From positions 1 to 64,000 of IMG/VR virus record IMGVR_UViG_3300025161_000004: a stretch of 64,000 bases of DNA, one strand, 5' to 3'. Numbering within the stretch: position 1 is the first letter of the stretch; each line of letters opens with the position of its first letter. A program made the translations under genes and the position numbers. Positions 12,053 to 21,992 of the stretch are shown here, in pieces. The notes under the pieces are model-generated. The model did no database searches, was not told where the DNA came from, and saw only the letters and a program-made list of their open reading frames with translations.

Positions 12053-12334
12053 CTATTTAGTTTCACGTTCTGGAGCTCCATTAATTTCAATGCATGCAAC
12101 GCCTAATGCTGTCACTTTTCGTATCATTTCCATAATTTCCCTGTTACCATTAGTACCTTGTCTTTCATCCATAGTTGATGCCAAACTTCTGGCTTTTGAA
12201 AGATACTCCTCCATCCATAGAATAAACGATGATGGATTGTGAATTTCTTTATTCATATCGCCCCAAAGTTTTTCTTGATAGTCTCTTTCGGTATCTATTA
12301 TTCGATACGCTTCTTGTCTTGTCAGTGTTTTCAT
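12053..12334 (-). CDS. MazG-like all-alpha NTP pyrophosphohydrolase-like protein
   Basis: ERDYQEKLWG, MEEYL and IRKVTALGVACIE pattern. Confidence 0.55.
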   Translation of the reverse strand: MKTLTRQEAYRIIDTERDYQEKLWGDMNKEIHNPSSFILWMEEYLSKARSLASTMDERQGTNGNREIMEMIRKVTALGVACIEINGAPERETK

Positions 12335-12500
12335 AAAATTTATTTTTTTATTTATGGTAATTCAATAATTATAATATCAACACAATTCAAGAGAATTCAT
12401 TTATTCAAATTCAACATAATATGTCTAAAATTTTAACACTCACATTAGTGTGATATTATAATTAGTTAGTGAACTACCCACCCACGCCAAAGGCGATGGG

Positions 12501-13190
12501 TTAGGCTTCGGAAGTCATCACTCCAAGTAAATAATACCTACGTTTAATGTGAGATATTTTACCAGAACACAAACGAGAAATAGAACCAATGGAAACACTT
12601 AGTTTATCAGCAGCATCAACAACCCCGTCACAAACTAATTTCAAAGATTTTTCTTTGTCGAATATTTCTATTTGCTTTTTGTTCATTTTTCTCCCTTTCA
12701 TTATTCTTCTCATTTTTTCTGAATGTCCTTTTGGCATCTTTTTCCCTTTATTCCAAGATGGTTTCCCTCTATTAGCATCTCCTATTTTCTTTTTTGTTTC
12801 GTCAGATAACTTAAGCCCTTTATGTGACTCTATATTAGCAATTCTTTGCTTTTCTGTATATTTGCCTGTTCTTGATTTAGCAATCTTTTTCTTTGTAAGT
12901 TCTGACATTCTACCTTTGTTTGTGCCTCCTAAGTCTAAATTATACCCATTAGGTGATAAACAATCGTATTTTGATATAAAATCTCTTTCCAGTTCATTAA
13001 GTTTATCAAGACAACTAATGTTGTCAACTAAAATAGTTTTTACAAAGTTATCTTTGCCATATTTTTTCAATGCATTTTTAAAAGCAATTCCGCTTCCAAG
13101 ATATGTATTTCTATCTCTGTCATTTATACTTTGCCCAATATACTTTTTACCATTTACGAGGCAAGTTGTTAAATATATGTATCCTTTCAT
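12501..13190 (-). CDS. GIY-YIG homing endonuclease with NUMOD3 repeats and a C-terminal HTH (Seg-like)
   Basis: GYIY, YIGQS, YLGSG and GYNL. NUMOD3-like SELTKKKIAKS and SDETKKKIGDANRGKPSWNKG. Confidence 0.92.
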   Translation of the reverse strand: MKGYIYLTTCLVNGKKYIGQSINDRDRNTYLGSGIAFKNALKKYGKDNFVKTILVDNISCLDKLNELERDFISKYDCLSPNGYNLDLGGTNKGRMSELTKKKIAKSRTGKYTEKQRIANIESHKGLKLSDETKKKIGDANRGKPSWNKGKKMPKGHSEKMRRIMKGRKMNKKQIEIFDKEKSLKLVCDGVVDAADKLSVSIGSISRLCSGKISHIKRRYYLLGVMTSEA

Positions 13191-13195
13191 AGGTA

Positions 13196-13203
13196 CAAAT
13201 ATA
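13196..13203 (-). promoter_or_regulatory. Bacteroidetes-type -7 promoter box (TAnnTTTG)
   Basis: TATATTTG 5 nt upstream of the GIY-YIG ATG, inside the element. Confidence 0.5.
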
Positions 13204-13341
13204 CTAAAAATTAAGACGAGTTGCTAAATATTTGTTTAAATTTTCAAAATGTAAGCGTAAAGGGGTGTCGCTTACATCACACCCACACTTCGTGATGAGT
13301 GTGTTTTACGCTCGTCCGTATAAAAAAAGGGAGTTAGTAAC

Positions 13342-13713
13342 TCACCTTTTATTTAGTAACACTGATATTTTCTCAACCATCTTCCAACATCTTTCTTTTA
13401 GTATATCAAATCTTTCTGTGTGCTTAGTATAATTTTTCAAAAAGAGTTTATTTGCCTTTTTGGGGTTATTAGGATACTCTAATCTTGATGCCATTTCGTA
13501 CATCTCTCTAACATCCCTCATATCTTCACTTTCGGATAGTTCACCAAGATAAAAGAGGATACACATTACATCTTCGCATATATTTTCATATTCCGATCTA
13601 TTTTTTTGTTTATTATCTAATTTACTAAACCTTTTTTCGTTTTTTCGTATACATTCTTTTATTTTTTCTAATTCTTCACAAATAGTTTTTTCATCATAAG
13701 TCAGGTTTTGCAT
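13342..13713 (-). CDS. hypothetical protein
   Basis: 123-aa ORF. Confidence 0.65.
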   Translation of the reverse strand: MQNLTYDEKTICEELEKIKECIRKNEKRFSKLDNKQKNRSEYENICEDVMCILFYLGELSESEDMRDVREMYEMASRLEYPNNPKKANKLFLKNYTKHTERFDILKERCWKMVEKISVLLNKR

Positions 13714-13860: not shown

Positions 13861-15939
13861 CTAAAATTCGAATAATGGGATGCCTATAGTATAAGATTTC
13901 ATTTGATATGTGAAATCTTTTAGTATCTCATCAATATATTCACCAATCATCATTTCATCATATACACAAAGAGAATTATCATCTACATCTTTCCATTTAC
14001 CATGTAAAGTATGATCTCTTTCAATTATAGATGCTAATTTTGTTACTGCTTGCTCTCTTACTACAAGCCTGTTCACAAACTTGTGTGCGTGTTCATCTAA
14101 TTTACTCCACTCATATAGGTCGCAATAATACTTAGGTCTTAACTTGATTCTTTCAAGTTCTTCATGTAATAGTTTTTTTGCTATGTCGTTGTACATATTT
14201 ATTATATTTTTTTCTTTATCGTTAAGGTTGTTTAACGTTGCAATATATTTACTGTTAAATAAACTCGCAAATATTTTTTTAGAAAAATTTAATTCGTGTG
14301 CATCATTTTTAAAACCATAAAAAATATTACCTTTGAAGGTAGTCAGTTCAGATATTTTGATTTTATGATGAAATCTATTACTAGTGAAGTTAGTTGTTAG
14401 AACTGAGATGGTACTATTACTTTTTTTTAGAATTTTTTTTGTTATGTTTTTATTACAAAAAAATTCATCAGGAACTACAATATCATCGTACGCCTTAACA
14501 TGTACTTTTATGATATTTGTTAATTCATTAAAAAGTGCAATTATTTCATTCTCTATTGCAGAGGTTAATGACTTAACATCACAATTAACATGTTTCAAAT
14601 ATGCTATTATAATGTTATCTTTATTACTATAATCATATTTTGGTTTCAAAATATAGAAACATTCATATTTATGTTTCAGGTATGTTTGCTTAATTAGTTT
14701 ACTATTAAAGTTCAGTCCAGTACGGAAAATATTTTCTTTTGTTAGAATATCAAAATATGAACCATTAAAAATTGTCGAATTATTACTGAATTTGTTTGGT
14801 TTTATACCATATAATTTATAGCTATAAAATATGAGAACTAATGATTCATTTTTTATTGTTGATTTTATGTTATTATATGGAAATTTAGTTAGTGAAATTT
14901 TATCTTGATTACTGAATATTTTACCAAGAAATATTGAATTTGTTGGGGTAATTTTTAATTCAAATTGTTTTTGTTTGAATTTCAAATAATCAGTAATGGT
15001 TTTAATATCACCACATTGAGCAACATAAAGATCTATTAATTCTTGTCTAACTTCATGTAGTTTATTCTTTAAAAATTCAATTGTTTCATCGGAATATTCG
15101 ACTGCCTCTCTATTCATCGTAACATTGATATCGCCAATATTTGCTTTAATAGCAACAGGAACTTGCCAGTCAGGTGCGTATAAACCTAACGCATTATAAT
15201 CAATTGGATACGCTACGTGACCCAAACAAATGTGAATATTATCGTAAAGATCACTTCCACGGTATAAAAAGGTATTGCCATGATGAATGGTATAATTGTT
15301 GATATTTGGCATGTGATGGTCAAAACCTTCAAAAATAATATTATCAAAATAGTATAGTTGTTTCTTAATTTCACTCAAAAATCTCCCTAAATCGCCAGAA
15401 GCAATGGTAACTTTAACTTCAGTACCATTTCTTTCGGTGGTTTCGGTTTGTTTAATTAATTCGATTTCTGGTGATGTTTCTCCTGCGTAAATGTTGTAAA
15501 AATACTCGATACCATCAACTCTTGTTTTTACAAAAAATGATTGAGTATCGTATGCCAAGGGAGTTTTAGAACCGATACCAAATGCTCCGAATTGTTCATT
15601 GGTTTGTCGTTTAGTCGATTCAAACAGTACTCCATAAACCTCTTCTATTGTTTGAGGAGACATACCAGTACCCTTATCAATAAATGAAATTGTATATCCA
15701 GTAGACTCTTTATTAAGACGTATTATAATTGGATATTTCACTCCTGCAGCCACATGTGAATCATAGCAATTTGAGGTTAATTCTCTAATAATACTACCAA
15801 TGATGTTCGAATATAGGTTTTTTGTGTATGACCTAAAAATCATCATCTGGGCATTATCACTTAATCGAACTTTGATTTTTCTTTGAGTGTTAATAGATTG
15901 AATATCAGCAGTATTAAGTAAATCAGTTTCTAATTTCAT
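13861..15939 (-). CDS. rIIA: rIIA-like protein (N-terminal GHKL/HATPase domain)
   Basis: GHKL motifs LYSN..IRELTSNCYDSH, DKGTGMS, STK and GAFGIGSK, typical of phage rIIA. Confidence 0.78.
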   Translation of the reverse strand: MKLETDLLNTADIQSINTQRKIKVRLSDNAQMMIFRSYTKNLYSNIIGSIIRELTSNCYDSHVAAGVKYPIIIRLNKESTGYTISFIDKGTGMSPQTIEEVYGVLFESTKRQTNEQFGAFGIGSKTPLAYDTQSFFVKTRVDGIEYFYNIYAGETSPEIELIKQTETTERNGTEVKVTIASGDLGRFLSEIKKQLYYFDNIIFEGFDHHMPNINNYTIHHGNTFLYRGSDLYDNIHICLGHVAYPIDYNALGLYAPDWQVPVAIKANIGDINVTMNREAVEYSDETIEFLKNKLHEVRQELIDLYVAQCGDIKTITDYLKFKQKQFELKITPTNSIFLGKIFSNQDKISLTKFPYNNIKSTIKNESLVLIFYSYKLYGIKPNKFSNNSTIFNGSYFDILTKENIFRTGLNFNSKLIKQTYLKHKYECFYILKPKYDYSNKDNIIIAYLKHVNCDVKSLTSAIENEIIALFNELTNIIKVHVKAYDDIVVPDEFFCNKNITKKILKKSNSTISVLTTNFTSNRFHHKIKISELTTFKGNIFYGFKNDAHELNFSKKIFASLFNSKYIATLNNLNDKEKNIINMYNDIAKKLLHEELERIKLRPKYYCDLYEWSKLDEHAHKFVNRLVVREQAVTKLASIIERDHTLHGKWKDVDDNSLCVYDEMMIGEYIDEILKDFTYQMKSYTIGIPLFEF

Positions 15940-16094: not shown

Positions 16095-16832
16095 ATGCCT
16101 AGAAATAAAAAAATTATTCCAGAACCTAATTACAATATTGACCATACATTAAAAGCAAAATCCGAAGATCCATTATATCATTTGCACGAATATGACGTTG
16201 ATTTGAAATCAAATCATATATATTTAATGGGTATTGAAACATACAATCAAGGAAATGGTCTGGAAGGTAGTGAACCTGGGATTGAATATATTATTGCTAA
16301 TAGATTTATACGTAATTTCAATATGCTAATGCGAGTTAATCCAAATGTACCCATAGTAATACATATGAAAACATGTGGTGGTTCTTGGGAAGAAGGGATG
16401 GCTATTTACGATACAATAAAATCATGTCCTTGGTTTGTTACCATTTTAAATTATACTCATGCCAGATCAATGTCATCTATAATATTTCAAGCAGCAAATA
16501 AGCGTGTCATGATGCCTAATAGTTCATTTATGTTTCATGATGGCATTTTCAGCATTCATGGGACTTTAAAACAAGTTAAATCTGCAATTGCTTTCAACAA
16601 ACATGCCGATAAAACCATGCTTGATATATATGCTAATATGATGAATATTACTGGTGAGTTTAAAGGTCAAGGTATTAGTAAAATAAAATCTTGGTTAAGA
16701 AACCAAATGGATAAAAAGGAAGATGTATATTTAACTGCACCAGAAGCAGTTAGACTTGGACTTGCTGATGAAGTGTTTAATTACGACTGGTCAAGTCTTA
16801 CCTCATATAATGAAGAACAAAAGAGTAGGTAG
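16095..16832 (+). CDS. clpP: ClpP-like serine protease
   Basis: TCGGS..EG, ARSMSS (catalytic Ser), FMFHD and EAVRLGLADEV. Confidence 0.85.
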   Translation: MPRNKKIIPEPNYNIDHTLKAKSEDPLYHLHEYDVDLKSNHIYLMGIETYNQGNGLEGSEPGIEYIIANRFIRNFNMLMRVNPNVPIVIHMKTCGGSWEEGMAIYDTIKSCPWFVTILNYTHARSMSSIIFQAANKRVMMPNSSFMFHDGIFSIHGTLKQVKSAIAFNKHADKTMLDIYANMMNITGEFKGQGISKIKSWLRNQMDKKEDVYLTAPEAVRLGLADEVFNYDWSSLTSYNEEQKSR

Positions 16833-17228: not shown

Positions 17229-17299
17229 TTTTATATTTTGGAGCGTAAAACCCATCGGTCTTTAGCCGATGGGATATAAGCGACAAATGGAGTGATGAT

Positions 17300-17710
17300 T
17301 TAACCTTGATTTAATATATATTGACGTATGGTTTCTGGTGAAGCCTCACCAATTGAACAGGCAAAATAACCATCAGACCAAAATGTTTTCTCAACCCAAA
17401 ATTGATTTAGCAAGAACTGACGATGCATACGCCAGATGTGAAACGTTGACTCTTGTTTTAACTTACGAACAATGGAACTGATTGACAACCTTGGAATGTA
17501 TTTAATAAGGAAGTGAATATGATTTACATCAGACTCCATTATCTCAATCTCAAAATCTGACCCATCAGATATGTTTTGAAGAAGTTGCTTCATATCATCA
17601 TTTAATTGACCAACCAGAAGTGGTTTGCGATATTTAACAGCAAAGATGATATGTGCTTTTAAATAGTGTTTTGAGCGATTTGTTGATGTGTAATTTGATT
17701 TTTTTGGCAT
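17300..17710 (-). CDS. tnpA: IS200/IS605 Y1 (HUH) transposase
   Basis: HIIFAVKYRK, HUH motif NHIH, FWSDGYF and catalytic Y in IRQYILNQ. Confidence 0.95.
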   Translation of the reverse strand: MPKKSNYTSTNRSKHYLKAHIIFAVKYRKPLLVGQLNDDMKQLLQNISDGSDFEIEIMESDVNHIHFLIKYIPRLSISSIVRKLKQESTFHIWRMHRQFLLNQFWVEKTFWSDGYFACSIGEASPETIRQYILNQG

Positions 17711-17796
17711 AATTAAGATTTTTTGTAAAAGTTTCCACCAAAAACAAACTTTTACAAAAAATTCGACTTGAAATGTGGAAAAATCATTTTTTTTCT

Positions 17797-17807
17797 AAGT
17801 ATTTATA
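17797..17807 (+). promoter_or_regulatory. phage late-type promoter motif AAGTATTTATA inside the IS
   Basis: The same motif precedes many structural and lysis genes in the window. Confidence 0.6.
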
Positions 17808-17838
17808 GATATAACATTTCATCTATAATCGTAAAGGA

Positions 17839-18348
17839 GTGGATTTAAAAAAGTACATAAGAAAAATAATCAGAGAAGAGTTCTTGAAAGAAGATGTTGG
17901 TGGTTTGGTATTATACCATGCCTCAAATGAATTGTTTGATAAATTTGAACTTAAGAAAGGGTATAGAACACATCTTTTTTCGGTTGAATTGACCGATTCT
18001 TATGCAATATTTTTAACTCCAGATGTGGAGGCAGCAAAGCAGTTTGGTGAAAAATATCTATATAAATGTAAAATCCATCCAAAGAGAACATTGGATTGGA
18101 GAGAATATTTAGACGTGAGAAGTTATGAGTGGCTTAAAAAGCAATTTGGGAATATCATCCCTTGGAGTGCAAGTGAATATTGGATGCTCTTGGATGATAA
18201 ACGTGTAATTGATTATTTACATCATAGAGGAATAGATTGTGTTATAATTAGTGAGATAGGTGAACACGACCAATTTGATACATATGCAATGCTTAATCCA
18301 AATGATATTGAAATTATTGAGGTGATTGATTTGAAAAAAAAAATTTGA
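17839..18348 (+). CDS. ADP-ribosyltransferase-like (ART-PolyVal-like) cargo protein with a phage leader sequence
   Basis: LYHAS..FDKF, AIFLTPD..AAKQFG, YLYKC and YAMLNPNDI. N-terminal MDLKKYIRKIIREEFLKE. Confidence 0.6.
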   Translation: MDLKKYIRKIIREEFLKEDVGGLVLYHASNELFDKFELKKGYRTHLFSVELTDSYAIFLTPDVEAAKQFGEKYLYKCKIHPKRTLDWREYLDVRSYEWLKKQFGNIIPWSASEYWMLLDDKRVIDYLHHRGIDCVIISEIGEHDQFDTYAMLNPNDIEIIEVIDLKKKI

Positions 18349-18830
18349 GTGAAAATCAATCTTCATCAAATCAAGAATATATTGCATATCACTCAAGTAA
18401 TTCAAAAATTGATGAGTTTGATTTTGATAAAATTGAATTAAAACCAAATTCTTCTACAAGAATTGATGGAATATTTTTTAGCAACATCCCACAAACATCT
18501 TGGGGTGATTATATCTATAAAGTAAAATTAATTTCGCAAAATCCAGCAATATTTGATTTAAGTAAAAGTAGATTTGATAGTTTAGGTGTTCAAGAAGCAT
18601 TTGATGCATTATTACGTGGCGATACATCATATATTATTGAAGACTTGGTTGAATATGGTGGTATAGAACAGGAAGATGCTGAAAATTTAGCTGAAAAATG
18701 GAGACGTTCTGATTTGATTGTTATTACAAACCAAGTGTATGGAAAACATGATACTGAATATATTGTGCCAGACCCATATTACAATGGAAAGTCTGCTCAA
18801 ATAATTAATTTGGGTTTAATTGAAAAATAA
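18345..18830 (+). CDS. second ART-PolyVal-like cargo domain, possibly fused to the upstream ORF by a -1 frameshift
   Basis: AYHSS..IDEFDF, GIFFS, WGDYIYKVKL...NP and EYIV. TTG start immediately after an A10 tract. Confidence 0.6.
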   Translation: MSENQSSSNQEYIAYHSSNSKIDEFDFDKIELKPNSSTRIDGIFFSNIPQTSWGDYIYKVKLISQNPAIFDLSKSRFDSLGVQEAFDALLRGDTSYIIEDLVEYGGIEQEDAENLAEKWRRSDLIVITNQVYGKHDTEYIVPDPYYNGKSAQIINLGLIEK

Positions 18831-19979
18831 ATGTTAAAGGCATATAAATATCGCATATTTCCAACAGAAGAGCAACAAGGTCTTCTTGCCAACATATTTG
18901 GTCAAACCAGATTTGTTTACAATCTTGGGCTGGAAACCAAAATATCTGCTTATGCTGGAAACAAAACAAACATTGATTGCTTTGACCTAATTAAACAGGT
19001 GAAGGAGCTGAAAGATACCGAATGTCCTTGGCTCAAGGAAGCACCATCACAGGCTTTACAAATGGCACTCAGAAACCTTGATAATGCATACACCAACTTC
19101 TTTAAGGGAAAAGGATTTCCAAAGTTTAAGAACAAACATGGAAAACAATCATTTCAGTTGCCACAAGGTGTGTTCTTATCAGAAGATAACAAACAAATAT
19201 TCATTCCAAAGCTTAAATTCGTTGGAATTGATTTGCATAGAGAATTTAAAGGCGATATTAAAACAGTTACTGTAAGCAGAACAGTAACAAACAAATATTT
19301 CGTGTCAATTTTGGTTGACAACAAACAGGAATTACCAAAGAAGAAACCAATAACAGAACAATCTGCTGTTGGGATTGACCTTGGGATAAAAGATTTTGCA
19401 ATAACATCAGATGGAAAGAAATTCGAGAACAAAGATTTCTTTAAATCTACAATGCAAAAATTAAGAGTAGCACAACGCTCTCTCGCAAGAAAGCAAAAGG
19501 GAAGCAATTATTATAAACAACAAAAACTCGTTGTTGCCTTGCTTCATGAAAAGGTGAAGAATCAAAGACAAGATTATCTTCACAAGATAAGTAAATACCT
19601 TGTTGATAATTATGATACTATTTGTCTTGAGGACTTATCTGTGAAGAACATGGTTAAAAACCACTGCCTTGCAAGAGCAATAAGTGATATGGGTTGGAGA
19701 GAATTCAGAACAATGTTGGAATATAAAGCTGAGTGGCAAGGAAAAAATCTATCAGTAATTGGTAGATTCGAGCCATCAAGCAAGACTTGCAATTGTTGTG
19801 GATATATCAACAAAGAATTGACTCTTAATGATAGGGAGTGGACATGCAAAGGTTGTAATACCAAACATGACCGTGATGTTAATGCATCAATAAATATTAA
19901 AAATTTCGGGCTTAGGAACAAGTCCAGCGTTGCTCAAAGTGATGGGATACCATGTGCTTGCAACGTAGAAGCCCATTAG
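18831..19979 (+). CDS. tnpB: RNA-guided endonuclease TnpB
   Basis: KAYKYRIFPT HTH, RuvC-I GIDLG, RuvC-II CLEDL, Zn finger CNCCG..CKGC and RuvC-III DRDVNA, all intact. Confidence 0.97.
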   Translation: MLKAYKYRIFPTEEQQGLLANIFGQTRFVYNLGLETKISAYAGNKTNIDCFDLIKQVKELKDTECPWLKEAPSQALQMALRNLDNAYTNFFKGKGFPKFKNKHGKQSFQLPQGVFLSEDNKQIFIPKLKFVGIDLHREFKGDIKTVTVSRTVTNKYFVSILVDNKQELPKKKPITEQSAVGIDLGIKDFAITSDGKKFENKDFFKSTMQKLRVAQRSLARKQKGSNYYKQQKLVVALLHEKVKNQRQDYLHKISKYLVDNYDTICLEDLSVKNMVKNHCLARAISDMGWREFRTMLEYKAEWQGKNLSVIGRFEPSSKTCNCCGYINKELTLNDREWTCKGCNTKHDRDVNASINIKNFGLRNKSSVAQSDGIPCACNVEAH

Positions 19980-20020
19980 TCTTTAGCTAATGGGTAGTTC
20001 ACTGAGTTCATATTATGGTT
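19890..20020 (+). ncRNA. TnpB omega/reRNA scaffold plus guide (guide from the right flank, 20003 onward)
   Basis: Stems gggctt/aagtcc, cgttgc/gcaacg and the right-end hairpin ending TCAC. The 5' boundary is approximate. Confidence 0.6.
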
Positions 20021-20256: not shown

Positions 20257-20477
20257 GATCTTATGTATTTTTCTCTCAGATTATATATTTCAATAGTTAA
20301 TTTTCTAATTTCTTCATAAAGGTGCTCTAATCCAGAATCGTTATTTTTAATTAATATTGGCACTCTACGCTGAAGCGTCACTTTTAATTCCTCCTTTTCT
20401 TTTATTTGGTTTAATAGTGTGGTTATTTCTTTTTCACTCCTTTTCATCATTAACAAATTTAGTTTTTTTATTGACAT
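20241..20477 (-). CDS. hypothetical protein
   Basis: Short ORF in an operon-like run. Confidence 0.5.
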   Translation of the reverse strand: MSIKKLNLLMMKRSEKEITTLLNQIKEKEELKVTLQRRVPILIKNNDSGLEHLYEEIRKLTIEIYNLREKYIRSNQIH

Positions 20478-20664
20478 CCATATTGATGTAATCTAATTTA
20501 GATATTTTTTCACCTTCTCTTGTATCTCTTAAACTACCAACTCCAAAATGAAATTCATCACAAATTATTTTATTTGTAAATGTGTTCATATAAATTATTC
20601 TTCTACCATTATTTTGCCTAATAATGATTCGTTTATAATCATGATAATGATTTACTACAATCAT
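20434..20664 (-). CDS. hypothetical protein
   Basis: Short ORF, ATGA overlap with the upstream gene. Confidence 0.55.
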   Translation of the reverse strand: MIVVNHYHDYKRIIIRQNNGRRIIYMNTFTNKIICDEFHFGVGSLRDTREGEKISKLDYINMDVNKKTKFVNDEKE

Positions 20665-20927
20665 TTTTTTATTAATATATTATCTTTTGTCCATTCACAT
20701 TCATAAATGGGAACTAACTCCCATTCATTTGGATTTTCGATTAATCCCAATCGATATAATTTAAGCATTTTGTTTATGATTAAAAATCTATCATATACTT
20801 CATGATAATTGCACTGAGGTAAAATCCTACCAGTATGACGGTGGAATATCTGATAACCAATAATAGGATTTAATTGATTTTTATCCAAATCAAGAATTGT
20901 TTTACAGTCTGAAAGTGTTATCTTCAT
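20661..20927 (-). CDS. hypothetical protein
   Basis: 88-aa ORF. Confidence 0.6.
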   Translation of the reverse strand: MKITLSDCKTILDLDKNQLNPIIGYQIFHRHTGRILPQCNYHEVYDRFLIINKMLKLYRLGLIENPNEWELVPIYECEWTKDNILIKK

Positions 20928-20966
20928 ATTTATTTTTGTTTAATATTATTTTATAATTTCTATGAT

Positions 20967-21617
20967 TTATCTATATTTTTCTAAGGCTTTTTTGATTAGT
21001 TCAGCATCCTCAAAACGTTCTTCAGCAATTGCATTTATTAACTCAACTTGTAGTTGAGTTTCATTCATTGTATCGTATTTATTAATCTTTTCAGCTATTT
21101 TTAATTCAATATTAGATTTCTTCTTTTTATTATAAAATTCATCTGCTATTTCTTTAGTTAAATTTTGGCTATAGTAAATTGTTTCTGTGTCAAATAATAA
21201 ATGGTTAAGTAATTTAAATGGTAAAGCTAATGCAATTGGAATGATACATCCCATTATTGACATTAGGATAAAAAATAGTAACTCATAAAGTATAACTGTA
21301 TATTTTAGAATCTCATTTAATTTTATAATTGTGATTGAAAACAAAACTAATGATGATATAAAGTATATAACGTAAAACCAGTTATACTTAAAAAGAAATT
21401 GATAAACACCCATATAAAAACAAAAACAATATATTGGCGATAAAAAAATTATCGACCAGAAAGATAATTGATTGATATTTTCTTTGGCACTTAAAGACCA
21501 CACCGTAATAAAAGTTAGAAGTGTGATGACTAAAAATGACTTAGTGAATACTTCTCTTTTCTTAAAAAACTCAATATAATTAGAGTTTAATAATGGTGTA
21601 AAAAAATACTCTTTCAT
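20967..21617 (-). CDS. membrane protein with a C-terminal UVR (UvrB/UvrC) motif
   Basis: About 4 TM helices, then LINAIAEERFEDAELIK. Confidence 0.7.
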   Translation of the reverse strand: MKEYFFTPLLNSNYIEFFKKREVFTKSFLVITLLTFITVWSLSAKENINQLSFWSIIFLSPIYCFCFYMGVYQFLFKYNWFYVIYFISSLVLFSITIIKLNEILKYTVILYELLFFILMSIMGCIIPIALALPFKLLNHLLFDTETIYYSQNLTKEIADEFYNKKKKSNIELKIAEKINKYDTMNETQLQVELINAIAEERFEDAELIKKALEKYR

Positions 21618-21992
21618 ACATTATTGAAGTTTACCTGTTAAATCACTTATTTGTCTTCTAATATCTTCTATAGCCATATTCAGACCTTCCATCTTACCAC
21701 CATCTTTGTTTAACTTTACTTTCTTTCGGTAGTTCATTTATGATATCACTAATCTTCATAATCTTTGTTTTTTGGGTAAAAATAGTATTTTTTGTTAAAT
21801 TTAAAAAAAATATTCTTATTATTAAACCATAATATATAATTTTTCACTAATTTTGGTTAAAATTTTTTTATGAGATTTTATATTCATATTCATAATATAT
21901 AACTTAACTCAGAAAAAAAATATGGAATAGACATTTATTATTTCAGAAGACTTGTGGGTGAAATGGTAGGTGGATCGTTCCACAATACACCA

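Follow-up and report, generated by a model that had tools for sequence, protein, structure and literature searches.

Results

Genes and transposon ends at the locus

The DNA analyzed here, referred to as the window, is a stretch of 64,000 nucleotides corresponding to positions 1 to 64,000 of the IMG/VR record IMGVR_UViG_3300025161_000004, part of the 246,768-bp genome of a jumbo phage. On the minus strand, an 851-bp element (12469-13319) encloses a single ORF (13190-12501) of 229 aa, in which profile searches recognized a GIY-YIG domain (Pfam, 1.2e-5) and NUMOD3 (8.7e-9), and which has a C-terminal HTH-like region and matched PHROG 314, "homing endonuclease" (6e-39). No solved structure was detectable by sequence for this protein. 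A box, TATATTTG (13196-13203), conserved in the copies of the element, lies 5 nt upstream of the ATG and is likely to be a promoter -7 element of the TAnnTTTG type.

The ORF is bracketed by ends of the IS200/IS605 type. The tetranucleotide TTAT (13323-13320) lies outside the element, at the end of a T-run after a terminator-like hairpin of the upstream gene, and constitutes both target and left cleavage site. The left-end core (13267-13319) consists of the 6-nt linker acggac, GAGCGTAAAA (13313-13304), formed by GAGCGT and the guide AAAA (13307-13304), a 26-nt imperfect palindrome with one bulged T (13303-13278) and ATGTAAGCGAC (13277-13267). The right-end core (12469-12509) comprises the guide GAAG (12509-12506), a 29-nt imperfect palindrome (12505-12477) and TAGTTCAC ending at 12469, that is TAGT followed by the right cleavage tetranucleotide TCAC (12472-12469). 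The ORF terminates inside the right end with GVMTSEA. These features are as described in the earlier note, which is correct to the base.

The same boxes, with the same 6-nt spacer after TTAT, delimit an IS605 at 17235-20002 (plus strand), which harbors a TnpA at 17300-17710 (minus strand; Y1_Tnp, 2.3e-32), two ORFs at 17839-18348 and 18345-18830 for which neither Pfam nor PHROGs gave any match, and a TnpB at 18831-19979 (OrfB_IS605, Cas12f1-like TNB and HTH). The composite left-end pattern occurs twice in the window, against 0 in 100 shuffles, and the two elements are the only full matches in the whole genome. Both ends of the GIY-YIG element fold as single-stranded DNA hairpins (left end -8.7 kcal/mol; right end -9.1 kcal/mol, z -2.7), although the window copy has a weakened right-end stem, and in the right-end helix 98% of cells were paired, with 2 pairs showing compensatory change.

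Relatives of the element in other viral DNA

Searches of deposited phage genomes by blastn, near and distant, with both regions found nothing, and no close homolog of the nuclease was present in 185,579 prokaryote genomes. In viral contigs, on the contrary, nine copies sharing 69-83% protein identity were found, all of them carrying both ends, with sizes of 812-860 bp and unrelated flanks. Identity rises from about 0.33 to 0.6-0.85 exactly after TTAT and drops after TCAC, and the window copy and L118, one of the relatives, are homologous only across the element. The relatives have 239 aa, while in the window copy a C-to-T change creates a TAA stop. The nuclease gene is under purifying selection (median dN/dS about 0.16 at dS 0.5-1.5), and the GIY, YIG, LE and GYN motifs are invariant in the 9 copies, while the Arg position is R or K. 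The IS ends are lacking at 175 loci of more distant homologs.

There are ten insertion sites in all. One of them, in a variant phage (L308), points to recent movement: L308 is 99.9% identical to positions 20463-21968 of the genome, then carries 381 nt of other DNA, and then a 100% identical element, including the C-to-T change, behind a different TTAT. The GIY body was also found in near-identical form in wastewater and compost metagenome runs; in one wastewater run (X4) and one compost run (X9) the flanks of the window copy were absent and the loose ends differed.

TTAT precedes the left end in 8 of the 9 diverged copies and in L308, while the remaining copy, L198, carries the guide AAAG and sits behind TTAC. 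Family-wide, AAAA goes with TTAT in about 85 of 87 left ends, AAAG goes with TTAC in 6 of 6 as well as in the GIY copy L198, and GAAG goes with TCAC throughout. Guide and target therefore covary as the rule established for IS608 predicts (PMC3201880). No terminal inverted repeats are present, and the right flanks do not repeat TTAT, in agreement with insertion without target duplication.

Replacement of tnpB

Comparison with sibling elements carrying only TnpB indicated that the GIY ORF occupies the place of tnpB. Left-end homology between the window copy and one such sibling, L022, extends over 94 nt (13226-13319) at 91.5% and includes a second small hairpin (13277-13249). In one GIY copy, L199, the promoter box and its spacing from the start codon equal those in front of tnpB in the siblings L014 and L066. 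At the other side, all nine copies keep the last 18 codons of TnpB in frame, as the shared tail LVG.LT.EA(HPIAFGVGG) before the stop. The remnant of the tnpB 3' end plus right end measures 62 nt in the window (12469-12530), rather than the about 55 nt estimated in the earlier note, and in the eight copies with an alignable right end the homology to TnpB-only elements starts exactly 62 nt from the end (the copy L202 gave no hit), which points to a single origin. This is about half of what cargo-less mini-elements of the same family retain (117-190 nt), and bears out the doubt, already raised in the note, that a full omega RNA could be present. Rfam detected no group I intron and no described RNA in the element or in related loci (no intron match in the window region at E<=1, nor in related loci at gathering score).

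Mobilizing enzyme and empty sites

No TnpA is encoded inside the element, nor in the partial contigs of three relatives (L118, L117 and L033). The only Y1 TnpA of the genome is that of the IS605 at 17235-20002, which the note proposed to test as the enzyme acting in trans. However, TnpA phylogeny splits by hairpin class, and this TnpA belongs to the short 23-nt class while the GIY element has long bulged hairpins; it is therefore probably not the cognate mobilizer.

A precise empty allele, in which the left flank of the window copy ending in TTAT would be joined directly to the right flank beginning TAACTAATT, was not recovered in the assembled contigs, nor was one found for any other site. 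The upstream 123-aa gene has no relative in viral contigs, and the downstream 93-aa gene has one distant relative, in L197, where gene order differs and no comparable junction exists. All other assemblies of the same phage have the element in place. An exact search for the flank of another site (site B) found nothing, and look-ups of the genes flanking L118 and L199 returned only filled alleles, the only hint being a unitig that stops exactly at TTAT. Neither a circle junction nor a donor joint was seen at the contig level.

Discussion

The element is best explained as a non-autonomous member of the IS200/IS605 family, in the long, bulged-hairpin subgroup that inserts 3' of TTAT, where the tnpB reading frame of a TnpB-only element has been exchanged for a Seg/I-TevI-like GIY-YIG homing endonuclease, a reading to which we assign a probability of roughly 0.7. 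The presence of the whole unit at ten different sites, the conservation of the gene by selection and the ORF-for-ORF exchange place on a comparative basis what the earlier note had inferred from a single copy. We infer that the unit moves by peel-and-paste as single-stranded DNA, using a Y1 TnpA supplied in trans, most likely of the long-hairpin class and deriving from another element, the host or a co-infecting phage. We further infer that the endonuclease supplies an inheritance advantage driven by double-strand breaks, as TnpB does, although nothing here shows that the protein cuts DNA. Being protein-guided, it cannot recognize arbitrary vacated sites, and its most likely targets are therefore fixed sequences, which could be TnpB-bearing sibling elements, converted using the shared left end and promoter and the 62-nt tail as homology arms, or a conserved site in competing phage genomes.

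The element shares with TnpB-only (IS1341-like) elements and with IS608 the subterminal imperfect palindromes on one strand, the 4-nt guide 5' of each hairpin foot, a left cleavage site equal to the target and external to the element, and a right cleavage site formed by its last four bases. Nevertheless, it contains neither tnpA nor tnpB, its target is TTAT rather than TTAC, its right cleavage site is TCAC rather than TCAA, and the distances are 16 nt (left) and 4 nt plus TCAC (right), against 19 and 10 nt in IS608. As in the TnpB/omega-RNA homing module of IS605 (Meers et al., 2023, bioRxiv 10.1101/2023.03.14.532601), a single nuclease gene sits in the same position and orientation and reads into the right end, but here the nuclease has no RuvC domain and cannot be reprogrammed by the flanking DNA. 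The domain make-up, an N-terminal GIY-YIG domain, NUMOD3 repeats and a C-terminal helix-turn-helix-like region, is that of free-standing phage GIY-YIG homing endonucleases (Seg proteins, I-TevI-like), and identity to seg-like genes of T4-like and other phages is 30-39%; yet the gene is not tied to one locus or one target gene, and its C-terminus is a translated piece of a transposon end. IStrons and related group I introns, which alternate between TnpB and homing-endonuclease cargo (bioRxiv 10.1101/2023.11.20.567912), show the same principle on an intron scaffold, while here the scaffold is the IS605 transposon itself. PATEs, of which many 170-410-bp examples exist in the same collections, have the same ends and depend on TnpA in trans, as is inferred for this element, but they do not code for protein and keep a longer right-end segment, whereas this element carries and expresses a nuclease gene. 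A GIY-YIG gene between IS200/IS605 ends was not found described in the part of the literature that we searched.

A possible, though less favored, alternative is that the GIY gene spreads only as a cassette whose homing site is the IS605 family itself, in tnpB or its junctions, being copied by repair into TnpB-bearing or cargo-less copies that it cuts. The hairpin ends would then belong to the recipient element, and transposition of the GIY unit by TnpA would not be needed. The left ends of the GIY copies are indeed closer to different TnpB-only or mini-elements than to each other (window copy to L022, 0.91; L118 to L104/L096, 0.94), while the right ends cluster with the GIY gene; this mosaic could equally mean gene conversion into resident elements rather than transposition. 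Similarly, the left end of L198 carries the AAAG guide and the guide-plus-hairpin sequence of a TnpB-only subfamily, and the 3' junction is fixed at 62 nt while left-side homology varies from 48 to 131 nt. Moreover, one run (X2) holds the same left and right ends without the GIY body, and X9 holds a mini-element with these ends. Other endonuclease genes repeatedly sit inside sibling IS605 copies (L111, L033, L008, L092 and L319), which suggests invasion of tnpB: L111 has a GIY gene 118 nt before the right end of a full TnpA+TnpB element, L092 and L319 have an endonuclease I-like ORF splitting tnpB at the same point, L319 also has an HNH gene, and L008 has a LAGLIDADG gene. On the other hand, the copy in L308 is 100% identical from the first base of the left end, which fits whole-unit movement better than conversion of a resident element, the homology arms would be short (about 60-130 nt), and no allelic pair with TnpB in one genome and GIY at the same site in a relative was recovered. 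The intact TnpB IS605 also coexists with the GIY element in this genome, although it is of the other hairpin class. The two explanations are not mutually exclusive.

It appears unlikely that the element is an ordinary TnpA-mobilized passenger-carrying IS whose nuclease cuts competing phage or host DNA at a fixed site unrelated to the element, in the way Seg/Mob enzymes cause marker exclusion, without giving the element any direct drive. In favor of this view, the protein falls in a phage homing-endonuclease family with seg-like genes of T4-like phages as its best phage matches, the carrier is a large phage with an RIIA-like neighbor gene, the clade was not seen in the prokaryote genomes, and the insertion sites are unrelated, so that the nuclease cannot be homing to its own locus. 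However, the exact replacement of tnpB and the in-frame retention of its tail, seen in three independent GIY lineages, look like an interaction with the IS itself rather than random cargo capture, and the near-identical copies in very different habitats argue against a target specific to one phage lineage. That the composite is a dead relic of a homing endonuclease gene once landed in an IS605, as the C-to-T change that weakens the right-end stem and truncates the ORF by 10 codons, the lack of a TnpA of the matching class and the lack of a recovered empty site might suggest, is contradicted by the ten sites with exact boundaries, the identical second-site copy, the near-identical copies in other habitats, the compensatory changes, the covariation of guide and target and the purifying selection.

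A more speculative, tentative possibility is that homing endonuclease genes and TnpB are interchangeable, competing drive modules of IS200/IS605 transposons in phage populations. The GIY-YIG enzyme would then cut and convert TnpB-bearing siblings, a protein-guided nuclease actively displacing the RNA-guided one, while the cassette would keep the transposon's ends, use TnpA to reach new sites and even be retargeted from TTAT to TTAC by left-end exchange.

TnpB is thought to persist because it cuts the site a transposon has just left, so that the element is copied back in. In the reading favored here, the same transposon scaffold has exchanged that RNA-guided nuclease for a classical protein-guided homing endonuclease, and the swapped element has since diversified, moved and spread across habitats, giving a direct comparison of the two strategies in one scaffold. 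The occurrence of three GIY-YIG lineages and of LAGLIDADG, HNH and endonuclease I-like genes inside IS605 copies suggests, in addition, that these copies are themselves targets for homing endonuclease genes. At about 850 bp, the element offers a small and experimentally tractable system for asking what a transposon needs from its nuclease, whether endonuclease genes and TnpB compete, and how specific TnpA enzymes are for hairpin classes.

Organization of the element

The window opens a single 246,768-bp virus record with 28.6% G+C, and on its minus strand the segment 13319-12469 reads exactly as the earlier note described it, namely as a GIY-YIG gene enclosed by IS200/IS605 ends. On the left side a T-run ends in TTAT and is followed by the 6-nt linker acggac, GAGCGT, the tetranucleotide AAAA, a 26-nt imperfect palindrome with one bulged T, and ATGTAAGCGAC. 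A 229-codon ORF occupies the middle, while the right side consists of GAAG, a 29-nt imperfect palindrome and TAGTTCAC. The ORF encodes a GIY-YIG/NUMOD3 protein according to Pfam and belongs to PHROG 314, "homing endonuclease", at 6e-39. The same boxes with the same spacing are carried by the IS605 at 17235-20002, which holds TnpA at 17300-17710 on the minus strand, two unknown ORFs, and TnpB at 18831-19979. The composite left-end pattern occurs twice in the window and never in 100 shuffles, and these are the only two full matches in the genome; the observation is confirmed.

The IS605 of the window reaches 2,768 bp because the two unknown ORFs, overlapping and of 169 and 161 aa, sit between tnpA and tnpB (17839-18830, plus strand), where neither showed a Pfam or PHROG match. 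Its closest relatives (loci L034 and L070, with TnpA 96-97% and TnpB 91-95% identical) are about 2.3 kb long and have less inserted DNA. The neighboring genes, at 13861-15939 on the minus strand and 16095-16832 on the plus strand, are an RIIA-like protein and a ClpP-like protease. The only distant relative found, the 178-kb viral contig L197, has ClpP at 86% identity but a different gene order, and no IS605 follows its ClpP.

A family of copies with exact boundaries

Searching the nuclease against viral and metagenome contigs returned eight full-length relatives at 69-83% identity, here designated L117, L118 (same contig as L200), L198, L199, L201, L202, L203, and L204, after which identity drops sharply to 44% or less. 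Every one of the nine copies has a left and a right end of this type, the elements are 812-860 bp long, and all lie in unrelated flanks. In a MAFFT alignment including 60-nt flanks, mean pairwise identity is about 0.33 outside the element, rises to 0.6-0.85 exactly after TTAT and falls again exactly after TCAC; the window copy and L118 are alignable only across the element. None of 175 loci holding more distant homologs has such a right end, and no close homolog was found in 185,579 prokaryote genomes.

Three other assemblies of the same phage have the element at the same site, whereas a Logan contig from a hot-spring run (L308) is different. Its first 1,507 nt match genome positions 20463-21968 at 99.9%, then come 381 nt absent from this genome (L308:1508-1888) and, directly behind another TTAT, the element at 100% identity for 827 nt, to the contig end. 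The flanks of the site occupied in the window are not covered in that run, and the join is therefore not a repeat-induced chimera. The 381-nt stretch includes an 81-codon ORF whose end now runs into the left end of the element, hence the region right of 21968 is a variable spot between strains.

The internal 731 nt of the element occur almost word for word (0.88-0.89 of sampled 31-mers) in wastewater and compost runs, and partly in landfill, digester, and manure runs. In the one wastewater run (X4) and the one compost run (X9) that were compared with the window, coverage stops at the ends of the element and the loose ends differ. The compost run also holds a mini-element in which these very right and left ends are joined through 17 nt (window 12500/13278 joint), while a hot-spring run (X2) holds the same 94-nt left end and 56-nt right end without the GIY body, plus a 247-bp deletion next to the right end (12221-12467). 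No precise empty allele, donor joint, or circle junction was found among the assembled sequences examined; one unitig of the L199 locus ends exactly at TTAT, as a graph branch at the insertion boundary would, but this is only a hint.

Guides, hairpins, and target sites

In IS608 the cleavage sites are read by four bases located 5' of each hairpin foot, and the left cleavage site is also the target (PMC3201880). In the family described here the guide AAAA goes with TTAT and the guide GAAG with TCAC, while copy L198 has guide AAAG and sits behind TTAC. A scan for AAAG-guide left ends returned seven TnpB-only elements, six of them distinct, all lying behind TTAC; about 85 of 87 distinct AAAA-guide left ends lie behind TTAT, and none behind TTAC. 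The hairpin sequences differ widely between GIY copies, yet most of them fold as single-stranded DNA, although two left ends (L204, L202) and the right end of L202 did not fold better than shuffled sequence. The right-end helix is 98% paired, and two positions changed on both sides. In copy L117 the left end (L117:16-90) is aberrant, as the guide reads GAAA and the hairpin equals one that ends in TAGTTCAC in locus L050, a right-end context; it looks like an end that has been swapped or rebuilt. The TTAT targets usually close a T-run, and in the window (13320-13345, minus strand) this run follows a small G+C hairpin after the upstream gene, like an intrinsic terminator. Insertions may therefore favor terminator tails.

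Replacement of tnpB by the nuclease gene

The nine ORFs differ by dS 0.5-1.5 but have a median dN/dS of 0.16, indicating that the gene is alive. Eight of them run to the TAG inside TAGTTCAC and are 236-239 aa long, while in the window copy a C-to-T change creates a TAA stop ten codons earlier and weakens the base of the right-end stem. The identical second-site copy in L308 carries the same change, so this variant has evidently still moved.

The left end and the likely promoter region are homologous to those of TnpB-only elements, and the window copy matches one of these, L022, over 94 nt at 91.5%. In copy L199 the box GTATCTTTGTATT is followed directly by the GIY start codon, and in the TnpB-only elements L014 and L066 the same box is followed directly by the tnpB start codon. 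At the other side, the last 18 codons (LVG.LT.EAHPIAFGVGG*) are the tail of TnpB itself in the TnpB frame. In the eight GIY copies with an alignable right end, homology to TnpB-only elements begins exactly 62 nt from the right end, which points to one ancestral fusion, while L202, whose ends are divergent, gave no match. Cargo-less mini-elements of the same family keep 117-190 nt of the right side; the GIY element therefore retains only about half of the presumed omega-RNA module, and Rfam detected nothing.

The earlier note proposed the TnpA at 17300-17710 as the mobilizing enzyme. A tree of TnpA proteins taken from the surveyed elements splits, however, into two clades that coincide with hairpin class. 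One clade, which includes the TnpA of the window and its 92-97% relatives L034, L070, and L100, goes with a short 23-nt palindrome with a TCTTTAG-type loop, while the other, including L016, L049, L062, L079, and others, goes with long 24-29-nt palindromes with a bulged T. All GIY elements have the long class, and the genome has only the one Y1 transposase. The enzyme proposed in the note shares the guide and cleavage boxes but probably not the hairpin specificity, although cross-mobilization cannot be excluded.

Endonuclease genes in other IS605 copies

A scan of viral contigs for the left-end pattern gave more than 116 loci, most of them TnpA+TnpB elements of about 1.75-1.8 kb, TnpB-only elements of about 1.3 kb, or mini-elements of 170-410 bp, and several carry other nucleases. 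L033 (L033:2427-3240) is an 802-bp element with the same kind of ends enclosing an unrelated GIY-YIG/NUMOD1 gene (I-HmuI-like NUMOD), also fused in frame to the tail of TnpB and hence an independent origin of the same architecture. L111 (L111:3289-5800) is a complete TnpA+TnpB element with a GIY-YIG/NUMOD3 gene of a third lineage, inserted 118 nt before the right end; that is the length of right-end segment that mini-elements keep, and the presumed omega-RNA module may therefore be intact, although TnpB loses its tail. All three GIY lineages read in frame through the tail of TnpB to the same TAG. L008 carries a LAGLIDADG gene, while in L319 (L319:2725-5650) and L092 (L092:8447-10340) an endonuclease I-like/DUF1064 ORF (302 and 288 aa) splits tnpB at the same codon, just after a conserved acidic motif, with no group I intron detected by Rfam. 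L319 also has an HNH endonuclease ORF between the left end and tnpB.

Within the nine-copy clade the right ends cluster with the gene, whereas the left ends are mosaic: the window copy is closest to L022, L118 is closest to L104/L096, and L198 carries the guide-plus-hairpin sequence of the AAAG TnpB-only subfamily.

Relation to known systems and probable mode of spread

By its structure the element falls within the IS200/IS605 family as a non-autonomous derivative, while it does not fulfill the criteria for a TnpB/omega-RNA element or for an IStron. Its protein has the domains of a Seg/I-TevI-like GIY-YIG endonuclease, but the criterion of a single homing site is not satisfied. That related group I introns alternate between TnpB and homing endonucleases is the nearest published idea (bioRxiv 10.1101/2023.11.20.567912), whereas no report of a GIY-YIG, or any classical homing endonuclease, between IS200/IS605 ends was found in the incomplete body of full-text literature searched.

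The element has complete, selected IS200/IS605 ends and a selected nuclease gene in the place of tnpB, and it occurs as a unit at many TTAT (or TTAC) sites, including very recent ones. We infer that it moves by single-strand peel-and-paste using a TnpA supplied in trans, which is probably of the long-hairpin class and comes from another element, the host, or a co-infecting phage. We likewise infer that the nuclease gives a break-driven advantage; a protein-guided enzyme cannot recognize arbitrary vacated sites, so it cannot simply copy the job of TnpB, and the data favor a fixed target. The mosaic left ends, the fixed 3' junction, and the many endonuclease genes nested in sibling IS605 copies suggest that TnpB-bearing siblings are that target and are converted by repair, a fixed site in competing phages being the alternative. 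The two routes of spread, transposition and conversion, are not exclusive, and IS605 copies appear to be repeatedly colonized by endonuclease genes.
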